In this document: positions 7,501 to 36,893 of the stretch, one piece after another
How positions within the stretch are numbered: the stretch's first letter is position 1
Layout of the letters: every line of letters starts with the position of its first letter
Assembly: GCA_020536535.1 (NCBI GenBank)
Contig: JAHLWZ010000605.1
Span: forward strand, 21,625 to 85,624
Direction: 5' to 3'
DNA length: 64,000 nucleotides
From: Pelomyxa schiedti
Lineage: Eukaryota > Protista > Evosea
Made by a program: the position numbers and the translations under genes
Notes under the pieces: model-generated
Database searches by the model: none
What the model was told of the DNA's origin: nothing
The model's input: only the letters and a program-made list of their open reading frames with translations

Positions 7501-9712
7501 AAATTCCTCAGAGGCAGCTGCCAAAGAACAGGTTTCTTTGAACCTTTGTATTAATGTTTCTTACTCCCTCTGAACTCCAGATTCAAGAATTGACTGATAA
7601 TATGCAAAGACTCAGTGCACAACAGCAGCAGGAGCAGCAGGAACACAGACACCAAATCGATGTTTTGGAGCACTCTATTTCCTCTCTACAAGAGAATGCG
7701 GAGGTAATGCGCCAGAGACATGCTGAGGAGATTGACTTGCTCCGTAAAACACAAGAGGATGAAGCTGCCCAGCATCAGGCTTCCACACAAAAGCTTGTTG
7801 CGCAACTTGCACTTCTCAGTGAGCAAAGTGGTGAAATGCGACAGCAGGCGGAACAAAAACTTGTTCAACTTTCACAGATGAATGAAGAAATCGAAGTCAA
7901 AAGGAAACAAGACGAACTTGCTCTTAAACGCAATGTTACAAGTACTGTAAAAAAGAAAAAACGCAAGCTAATAGAAAATAGAACTGGAGCATGATTTGTC
8001 GGATAGCAATTCACAATATTCCAAGCTACAATTGCAGTTTTCTCAGTCGCAAGCCGAGATAAAAGCTCTGAAGGTTGTAGAATTTAGAGTCCATTCTATG
8101 TAATCATAATTAGGAAAGAATTGAAGAACAAGAGAATATGCATACAGCTACTGCAAAAAAACTACAGACAAAGATTGCTTCACTAACAACAGTATTGAAT
8201 TACACTAAAGAGTGAGTGTAGTTTAAAACGCCTTCCATAGGAAGTGGCAACTGCAAAGGAGAAATGGCGTACAACCATTTCCTTGGGCAATCAAAAAGCC
8301 AAACAGCTTCTCTCTCTTAATGCCCGACTTCTTCAACAAGTATCTTTTCCAAACTTCCATCTCGATTGAAATTAATCTCTATTTCTTAAGGCCGAACAAG
8401 AAAAAAAGCGGTTTCAAGAAGAATCTAAAGTAAGCAGTAAGCGCGCGCAACGAGTCAGGGAATTGGAAAGCCAAGTCGAGACTCTCAATAGTCAACTGGA
8501 ATCACATAAGTTGCAAGTTGAAACACTGACACAATGTGGATTACAAACGGGAAAAATGCAAGAGGCAAGATATGCACTTTTTACACAAACCTTGACCATA
8601 TTTAGACCCTTTCTGCAGAACTGGCACAAACAAAAGAAACCTTCACAAGGTAATGTTTCACGCTGCAATTCACCCTAATTTCCTTGTAGGGAGGTTGCAC
8701 TACTTCAAAAGAGCGTGCAAAGTTTAGAAGAGCAACTGAAGGTTCCTTTATAGTGACTGGTTGCAAGATTAACTTCATTTCCTTTCAGGAATCACAAAGC
8801 CACAGTAGCGAAACTCAGTCCCTATTGACTTCCAAAGATGAGCTACTCCGGTCAACACAAGCCGCCGTCGAAGAGGAACAGCGCAAGGGTGTCAAGTGTG
8901 TCCGCTCCCCCCTCCCATATTCCGCGAATCCAAAAAAAACCCCCTCTTAACCCATAACCCAAAAAAAAAAAAAAAAAAAAAAAAANNNNNNNNNNNNNNN
9001 NNNNNNNNNNNNNNNNNNNNNNNNNNNNNNNNNNNNNNNNNNNNNNNNNNNNNNNNNNNNNNNNNNNNNNNNNNNNNNNNNNNNNCAAAAAAAAAAAAAA
9101 AAAAAAAAAAGGGCACAGAACACCATATCCAAGCTCACCAACCAAATCAAGGCGCTGGAAGATCAACTGGCGGACACGACGCGTGGCCGGGCGCACACCC
9201 ACCTCGACATACTCACGCCGGCGGCCGCGGCCCTCGTTGCCAACACGTCGACGTCGCCGGAGCTCCCGCCCGCGCTCCCGACGCAGGTGTCGTCGGCGCC
9301 GCCAGCGCCGCCGCCGCCAAAGCCGGCCGCCGCGCCGCCGGTCCCGCCGCCGCCTCCCAACGCCGGCGGATTCAAGGCGGCCAAGCCGACAGCGAGCACA
9401 TCCACCAACCTGATTGCGCAGATAAACGCACAGAAGCAACAACTGATGAAAAGGCAGCCGGAGGAGAAGAAGTCAAAGGTAACACTACCTTGTCCACTGT
9501 AGTATAGGTTTATGCTAAATTATAAATACTATGGCACCTAAAACACCCGCGCACACCGTCCCACAATCTCCTTATACGTTTGGCAGACGGATCCATCACA
9601 AATTCACTCTGTTGCCGAGCTTCTGTATGTGTCCCTGCACAAAAAATTCCAGTCTGTGCACGAGAACGGTGAAGCTGAAGATCTGGACGATGTGACTGAC
9701 GATTTTGTGTAA
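4549..9712 (+). CDS. Multi-exon protein: low-complexity N-terminus, two or more ubiquitin-like (FERM-F0/RA-like) domains, long coiled coil, polyproline and WH2-like C-terminus
   Basis: Repeated beta-grasp-like units (KRFRVQSSWTVQKVLNLVCQKF...EPLASFGFGTLFQSWEL; EPIRNIIKSVCSKFEI...ATLESYGLGWKFNTWNL). E/Q/K heptad exons span 6560-8880. After the gap: PPAPPPPKPAAAPPVPPPPP then NLIAQINAQKQQLMKR. The last exon is uncertain and the model spans the N gap. Confidence 0.55.
8986..9085. other. Assembly gap (100 N) flanked by poly-A runs
   Basis: Seen directly: 25 A before the gap and C plus 24 A after it, within a probable intron. Confidence 0.99.
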
Positions 9713-35555: not shown

Positions 35556-36893
35556 TTAATTGGACGATGGTACCAGCGAAGGTTGGGCTGTTGGATACAC
35601 TCCAGACAAATTGTACATTGCACAAACTCTAGAGTGGATTAAAAGGTGAGTTGGGCTCACAGGTTGTAGGAAATATACGGTGCAAGTTGGGATGCAAAAG
35701 AGACCAGGAACTCAGAAGCAAGTTGTCTTGTGTCAACGGTGGCAAGCAAACTGAGTTCAACAAAATAGCCATCAAAAATAGGCTCACCGTTCTGTGGGAT
35801 TGTAGTTGGTGTCAGGGCCAGGGCAGAAGGAATCATACAATTCTCTTTATTTCAGAGACAGTGACGGTCATTCCAGTTGGGTGATAAAACTTTGTCCCTG
35901 CACGGATGAATTGCCAAGTTAATTGCATCCCCATCAGCTTCAGAAATTCGTCTACATTGGGACTTGCCTCAGTCTAGTTCATAATTAATGTGAACTACTA
36001 TAAAAATGACGTTTCTCGGTAATATCATAAAATTTAAAGAGCACCACAATCTAACCATGACGACGTTTCTTATGACAACTTTGGGGTCTCTATCAGTTAA
36101 TATGGTTCCAACGTACTTCAGGTGCCTTAAACATTGTAAAATTCCCGTAACGGAGAAAAATATCTCACCAGCAATCAGGAGTCGGAGTTATAGTGTGCAC
36201 AGTGTGAAGCTCTGTTTGGACTGAACAAAGTGAGCCGTCAAGAAACCACGGCGGGGGGAAATCACACCTATCTTGTTCTTTAACTGCTCCAGGTAATAAT
36301 TCAAGTTGTTAATCACCGGATTTGAGAGTCCCTTGTTGACAAAGTCCTCCCGCTTCAACTTATCCAGCTGGGCGCCAGTCACATTTTTCAGTACAGCAGC
36401 CTCAGGGCTCACAGATATAGCCCACTTTTCAACCTGCTCTGCCGTCCAGCTCCTGTAATCTAGCATCCCATAATCGCACCACTTTCTCCAACAAATAAAC
36501 TACACACTAGCGTCCCCAGCCACCAAAGCCGAAGCGCCAGTCAACAAACAAGCAAGAAAGCAAGCACGCACAACAACAACAACAACTGGTTGGACGGGCC
36601 GACCAACCTTTTGGCTCGTACACAGACTCCGTCAGCTCGAACCTCTCTTCCTCCGAGTCGCACAGGCACCTGAGCCTCGCAACCAGCGCCGCCACGTTGG
36701 GCCTCTCCACCGCCCCGTGGTAGCTGCACGACATGGCCCCCGCGCTGCCCCCCGCCCCCGCGCCGCCGCCGCCTCCGCCAGCTCCCCCGCCGCCCCCGCC
36801 GGGCCCCCCCAGCTCCCCGCTGCTCCGCGTGCCCGTGACTCCTCCCCCGCCACCCGTCCCGCCCCGCGGCGGTATCCCCGTCACGCTGCGCAT
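35556..36893 (-). CDS. MED18: Mediator subunit Med18 with an internal SAM domain
   Basis: Spliced product CSYHGAVERPNVAALVARLRCLCDSEEERFELTESVYEPK-[SAM]-VQTELHTVHTITPTPDCWHLKYVG...VIRNVVMTEASPNVDEFLKLMG..F..GTKF...YFVELS...FASQLAPV. It aligns along its length with human MED18 (LLQGSV..LIHRLRGLCD..WHLRYLG..VRNCV..NLTDFLMEMG..YLVELS..FAEQLKPL). Confidence 0.9.

Follow-up and report, generated by a model that had tools for sequence, protein, structure and literature searches.

A symmetric 192-nt exon of the Pelomyxa schiedti Med18 gene probably encodes a very divergent SAM-like domain

Introduction

Med18 is normally a single-domain protein. It is counted among the Mediator head subunits, which rank with the best-conserved components of the machinery for eukaryotic transcription. 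The yeast subunit possesses a long non-conserved insertion, located in the same region as the insert that is the subject of this paper. The canonical form of the protein (Srb5; Pfam PF09637) is represented by human MED18 (7EMF chain R; 8T1I chain M). Together with Med20 and the C-terminus of Med8, Med18 makes up the movable jaw of the Mediator head (PMC6393861; PMC2475620).

Two further described systems bear on the locus considered here. The first comprises the SAM and PNT domains (SAM_1, PF00536; SAM_2, PF07647), with structures such as those of L3MBTL3 (8Y76), PHC3 (4PZN), Shank3 (9KSQ), DGK-delta (3BQ7) and the ETS PNT domains. The second is classical phase 1-1 exon shuffling, in which one exon corresponds to one domain, the introns on both sides are phase 1, and the reading frame is kept with or without the exon.

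The genome of the anaerobic amoebozoan Pelomyxa schiedti is intron-rich, with 7.4 introns per gene, of which 98.4% are GT-AG (PMC8887013). Here we describe a Med18 gene of this organism in a 64,000-nucleotide stretch of contig JAHLWZ010000605.1 (the window; all positions given below refer to it). Between two blocks of conserved Med18 sequence the gene contains a symmetric exon that, based on its codon usage, its borders and the predicted fold of the encoded peptide, is probably translated as part of Med18 and bears a fold of the SAM type. No paper that connects Med18 with a SAM domain came up in a full-text literature search.

Results

Organization of the Med18 gene

When exons are cut at the proposed splice sites, the gene is read as seven exons on the minus strand, the 192-nt exon counted (Table 1). 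An earlier note on this DNA had proposed that exon together with its borders and phase, and sequence reading reproduced all three exactly: the exon is preceded by ...gctag/ and followed by /gtgtga, giving it the form AG/.../GT, and it is phase 1 at both ends. Its in-frame codons (36269-36457, minus strand) specify 63 residues with 100% identity to residues 97-159 of the deposited protein KAH3760468.1, a product of 306 aa that is named mediator of RNA polymerase II transcription subunit 18. Skipping of the exon would join G to TC at the junction and form a valine codon (GTC) with the frame kept, both junctions being phase 1; the contention that skipping is frame-neutral thus holds.

Table 1. 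Features of the P. schiedti Med18 gene, in order of transcription (positions in the window)
Feature	Position	Strand	Description
Med18 exon 1	36608..36893	-	Ends in phase 1, CCA AAA G/gttggt; as in KAH3760468.1
Intron 1a	36460..36607	-	148 nt, GTTGGT...GCTAG; holds a (GTT)n run; purine-rich 3′ end
192-nt SAM-like exon	36268..36459	-	Symmetric, phase 1-1; corresponds to residues 96-160 of KAH3760468.1
Intron 1b	36221..36267	-	47 nt, GTGTGA...TTCAG; TTGAC and CTCAC motifs 21 and 14 nt from the 3′ end
Med18 exon 3	36169..36220	-	VQTELHTVHTITPTPDC, then a split Trp codon; entry phase 1, exit phase 2; follows ...gttcag/
Med18 exon 4	36056..36125	-	WHLKYVGTILTDRDPKVVIRNVVM; conserved WHL(K/R)Y block, aligned to human PWHLRYLG
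Med18 exon 5	35839..35973	-	45 codons; tblastn 100%; single copy in the genome
Med18 exon 6	35679..35791	-	As in the deposited model; single copy
Terminal exon, deposited model	35556..35628	-	VCAMYNLSGVYPTAQPSLVPSSN, stop TAA 35558-35556; follows a 50-nt intron, 35629-35678

Exon 1 opens with a Gly/Ala-rich N-terminal extension (36735-36893, ~85% GC), after which the conserved N-terminal block of Med18 runs from the ATG at 36734. This block corresponds to residues 12-56 of human MED18, and tblastn with KAH3760468.1 places it at the same location. Codons 1-53 of the deposited Med18 are low-complexity sequence and lie in a GC-rich island (80-88% GC, against 46.5% for the genome as a whole). Because conserved Med18 sequence begins right at the second in-frame ATG (36734), this ATG may be the true start codon.

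At the other end of the gene, the introns downstream of exon 3 are, in order, 43, 82, 47 and 50 nt long. Removal of the last of these as deposited (CC/gtatat...ctctag/A) yields a C-terminal tail of 23 residues, and its retention allows the frame to run seven codons further, to a TGA at 35657-35659; the donor site that the earlier note had chosen for this intron differs from that of the deposited model. Elsewhere in the window, a run of 100 N (8986-9085) presumably marks a scaffold gap left by the RNA-based scaffolding of the assembly.

Identity and copy number of Med18

The assignment of the gene to Med18, made earlier from the sequence, was borne out by profile and pairwise searches with the deposited protein. 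KAH3760468.1 scores against the Pfam Med18 profile (PF09637) with an E-value of 6.5e-12 and 46.3 bits, the family cut-off being 21, and the match forms one stretch spanning the insert, with residues 57-262 placed on profile positions 4-203. Human and mouse MED18 chains are matched at E-values of 8.6e-10 to 7.3e-9 in two collinear blocks, one on either side of the insert, such that residues 47-90 correspond to human residues 12-56 and residues 176-287 to human residues 82-199. Whole-protein searches used the deposited sequence, and the exon model was searched exon by exon; in the latter Pfam search only exon 5 matched Med18 by itself (E 0.0066, profile positions 135-172), and phmmer comparison of single exons with PDB sequences was uninformative.

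The exons flanking the insert thus match the family profile above its cut-off and are collinear with human MED18, with which they share the WHL(K/R)Y and (F/L)VELS blocks. From the position of the two aligned blocks, the insert (residues 96-160) and the 16 residues that follow it replace ~25 human residues, among them KGQQAS, which is where the insert had been predicted to fall; it lies between human MED18 residues 56 and 82. The P. schiedti protein differs from human MED18 in having ~64 extra residues with a predicted fold of their own between the aligned blocks, where the human protein has only the ~25, and in its Gly/Ala-rich N-terminal extension.

Exon-level protein and DNA searches of the 52.4-Mb assembly found exon 5, exon 6 and the 387-nt interval that contains the 192-nt exon once each. 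As neither the gene nor the insert DNA occurs a second time in the assembly, a paralogue lacking the SAM-like exon is absent and the insert does not belong to a repeat; this locus is the only detectable Med18 of P. schiedti. A genome-wide scan with PF09637 is uninformative on paralogues, as it misses even this gene on account of its short exons.

Probable use of the 192-nt exon

The deposited model splices the exon in. Augustus predictions, refined through PASA/EVM with the aid of single-cell (Smart-seq2) transcriptomes, underlie the annotation of this genome (PMC8887013); the model of this particular gene may stem from the gene predictor alone. With the exon included, the gene has introns of 148 and 47 nt at this location and of 43-82 nt elsewhere, and skipping needs an intron of 387 nt. 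Codon usage in the exon's frame amounts to 0.096 bits/codon, the best of the six frames, a value typical of the spread seen in coding windows (0.162 +/- 0.077 bits/codon) and higher than that of 92% of off-frame windows; in intron 1a it is negative in all sense frames.

The predicted SAM domain begins and ends at the AG and GT borders, in the sole phase that preserves Med18. Were the segment never translated, it would be difficult to account for an intact coding sequence for a folded domain inside an intron, with strand and phase both matching those of the host gene. A splice-compatible open reading frame by itself proves little, since 7.2% of dinucleotide shuffles of the 387-nt interval contained a frame-preserving open AG...GT cassette of at least 192 nt. 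What is beyond chance is the encoded peptide and not the open AG/GT frame by itself.

Judged within the Med18 gene only, the acceptor of the 192-nt exon is the weakest-looking one: it is preceded by 40% pyrimidines and has no YTNAC motif 14-24 nt upstream, the nearest YTNAY in intron 1a being located at -40. Each of the five other introns has a YTNAC motif 14-24 nt before its AG and 50-75% pyrimidines. A CAG lies 7 nt downstream of the exon's acceptor, and its use would break the frame. The motif takes the forms TTGAC, CTCAC, TTTAC, TTCAC and CTGAC in these five of the six introns of the gene (the six lie within 35629-36607, minus strand), and YTNAC may be the branch-site consensus of P. schiedti. 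The donor sites of the gene are loose (GTTGGT, GTGTGA, GTGAGA, GTTAGA, GTATGA and GTATAT).

Weak acceptors are typical of cassette exons in other eukaryotes, and the weak acceptor found here fits a cassette exon equally well as it fits non-use. The earlier note had suggested that the exon is possibly alternatively spliced. If it were a regulated cassette, canonical Med18, with the valine at the junction, and SAM-bearing Med18 would both be made, and the SAM module would be a switchable accessory. The purine-rich end of intron 1a and the 1-1 symmetry, by virtue of which skipping does not disturb the frame, are in keeping with such regulation, but the 387-nt intron that skipping entails is far longer than the other introns of the gene (43-148 nt), and we consider a regulated cassette unlikely, albeit the most serious of the alternatives to regular inclusion.

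A second alternative would place the SAM coding sequence outside the Med18 mRNA, in an independent or alternative-promoter unit that starts at the ATG at 36466, within the 387-nt intron, and was merged with Med18 by mistake during annotation. From this ATG, which precedes the acceptor by 7 nt, a frame stays open for 92 codons (36466-36188), but that frame would have to cross the 47-nt intron 1b into Med18 exon 3 on the same strand, thereby acquiring a 28-residue tail without fold support, and a promoter and a terminator would have to fit into ~140 and ~50 nt, respectively. Furthermore, the predicted SAM helices stop exactly at the GT donor, both borders of the exon lie in the one phase that preserves Med18, and a search of the protein collection found no fragment of 51-161 aa with a matching sequence on record. 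A nested unit is thus improbable.

Similarity of the insert to SAM domains

The proposal that the insert is a SAM domain gained support from its predicted five-helix fold, from structural matches and from profile-profile alignment; the curated Pfam SAM profiles miss it. Pfam searches with the exon and with the 92-aa open reading frame returned no family at E<=1, and neither the 56 SAM_1 nor the 52 SAM_2 matches that were obtained in the genome at E<=0.01 include the exon. When the 63 residues were compared by phmmer with 1.84 billion representative proteins, only KAH3760468.1 itself and two repeat-driven false matches were returned; the ESM Atlas gave no usable match for residues 96-160, and phmmer against PDB sequences gave hints only, to the Fli1 PNT domain (E 0.84) and the Shank2 SAM domain (E 1.1).

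AlphaFold2, applied to the insert alone as a single sequence, predicted five helices (residues 6-16, 18-25, 28-33, 36-41 and 46-61) that fill the exon from end to end, with a pLDDT of 80 and a pTM of 0.56 in the best of five models and a pLDDT of 51-63 in the remaining four. The top Foldseek matches of this prediction were the SAM or PNT domains of Shank2/3, DGK-delta, SAMHD1, CNK, PHC3, Scm, ETS PNT, L3MBTL3 and TIR-1, with TM values of 0.6-0.69 and non-significant E-values. In a search of 48,161 chains with VIA-align, which is independent of Foldseek, ~40 of the best 50 matches listed were SAM/PNT domains (Z 8.2-5.2), the best being L3MBTL3 (Z 8.2) and PHC3 (Z 8.1), for which the alignment takes in 62-63 of the 63 residues at 2.4-2.5 A. 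A Z of ~8 is middling for helical models, and the support that VIA-align lends to a SAM fold comes from the uniformity of the match list and not from the height of Z. On the SAM and PNT structures named in the Introduction, the predicted bundle superposes over 59-63 residues at 1.9-2.8 A.

A profile was also built from 22 full-length SAM domains taken from the SAM matches of the same genome. In hmmsearch with this profile the insert reached 12.4 bits, against a best value of 6.1 in 2000 shuffles, and in a six-frame translation of the whole window the insert segment ranked 1st of 1352 open segments. Alignment of the insert to the 22-SAM profile by hhalign gave a probability of 90.1%, a P-value of 1.6e-6 and a score of 30.9 over 43 columns, which cover the first 43 residues of the insert only; 150 shuffles scored no higher than 15.8 and 50 real windows of 63 aa no higher than 15.9, with probabilities of at most 6.4% in both sets. 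An N-terminal signature of the insert, SWT-EQV--W, and a G--L--L block align with those of the genome's own SAM domains, from which the insert differs by a helix 2-3 region that is four residues shorter.

Taken together, these comparisons make it very probable that the insert has a SAM fold. Because the curated profiles are blind to a sequence that has diverged this far from the curated families, the term "SAM domain" needs the qualifier "very divergent", and the insert is filed here as SAM-like, though it is probably a SAM domain. The reading under which the interval is an intron open by chance, Med18 is canonical and the SAM likeness is an artefact of helix-prone composition could accommodate the frequency of equally long cassettes among shuffles, the lack of a Pfam SAM match and of relatives, and the middling Z-scores, but it is very improbable in view of the separation of the hhalign result from both shuffled and real control peptides, the first rank of the segment in the window, a list of structural matches that is almost purely SAM/PNT and full length, and codon usage that is best in the exon's own frame.

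Other SAM genes and the origin of the exon

The P. schiedti genome contains at least 56 SAM_1-type regions, yet no paralogue of the 192-nt exon was found in the 52.4-Mb assembly. The SAM domains of the genome that come nearest to it belong to two tandem-SAM genes, on contigs C563 and C351, with an E-value of only 0.013 when 3771 segments were searched, and none of the SAM genes of this genome can be identified as the donor. Word-index searches with the whole of KAH3760468.1, with residues 54-306 and with the 92-aa open reading frame returned only KAH3760468.1 or nothing, the whole-protein query being swamped by poly-Gly words, and metagenome scans with the insert and with the exon 6 frame gave no match; Med18 of another archamoeba was not retrieved by these word-index and metagenome searches. 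An exact look-up of the deposited protein gave no contig on record.

The P. schiedti case resembles classical phase 1-1 exon shuffling in that the domain occupies exactly one exon, phase 1 introns lie on both sides and the frame is kept in either form. It differs in its host, a nuclear protein of the core transcription machinery in a protist and not an extracellular metazoan protein, and in having no identifiable donor gene. Since neither a donor nor a second archamoeba Med18 was recovered, it is from the 1-1 symmetry alone that we infer that the exon may have been acquired by shuffling and may be specific to this lineage.

Tandem SAM domains occur in several genes of the genome, on contigs C530, C328, C479, C1120, C563 and C351, and one tandem-SAM family with SWDVNEVASWLESQGIPP... 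repeats has at least four near-identical copies. Another SAM domain, on contig C694 (55401-55577, plus strand), is contained in a tight open frame of 84 codons; the candidate donors just downstream of it are all phase 1, as is one candidate acceptor 37 nt upstream. This SAM domain may also reside on a symmetric 1-1 exon, although the arrangement is ambiguous.

Discussion

In all probability the single-copy Med18 gene uses the 192-nt segment as a true coding exon, joined to exon 1 on one side and to Med18 exon 3 on the other, as in the deposited model, and the sole Med18 of P. schiedti would accordingly carry a divergent SAM fold of ~63 residues. The insertion point would lie between the first conserved Med18 block, which ends in ...ESVYEPK, and the strand leading to the WHLKY motif, and mature mRNA would contain the exon either always or in its predominant form. 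The observation from which this analysis started is confirmed as real; its interpretation, that of a lineage-specific and possibly alternatively spliced Mediator subunit with an added interaction module, is partly supported.

Because the conserved blocks are intact on both sides of the insert, the core fold of Med18 should be kept, and the core would still pair with Med20 and the C-terminus of Med8 in the movable jaw. From the jaw the SAM module would project as a handle for protein-protein interaction, pairing with some other SAM protein, of which this genome encodes many, or associating with itself; it is less likely that the module would bind RNA in the manner of Smaug/Vts1. A geometric concern is the near absence of linker sequence between the SAM helices and the flanking Med18 strands; AlphaFold2 prediction of the whole protein without an alignment (pLDDT 39.6) was too poor for the geometry of the insertion to be judged.

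As a tentative and rather speculative model, we suggest that P. schiedti may have permanently wired a SAM module onto the jaw of the Mediator head that contacts the Rpb3-Rpb11 part of Pol II and the TFIIB ribbon, such that Mediator would be recruited or clustered through SAM-SAM contacts with SAM-bearing regulators or through head-to-tail self-association. Were the exon a cassette, this SAM-based recruitment or clustering could be switched by splicing. If the model were true, regulators would be linked to the core transcription machinery in a novel way, by SAM-SAM recruitment of Mediator.

The protein sequence is already public as KAH3760468.1 and the case is known from one species; Med18 with a SAM-type exon is probably a new variant of a Mediator subunit that is already known. 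A folded interaction domain inside Med18 would constitute a rare domain gain in the Mediator core, in a position where the inserted domain would adjoin the surface that touches Pol II and TFIIB. Through SAM-SAM partners and polymerization, it would offer a simple handle on the coupling of regulators to Mediator in an early-branching amoebozoan. Since a single symmetric exon neatly holds a single domain here, and the host is a protist rich in introns, it would also bear on the age of domain insertion at the level of the exon.
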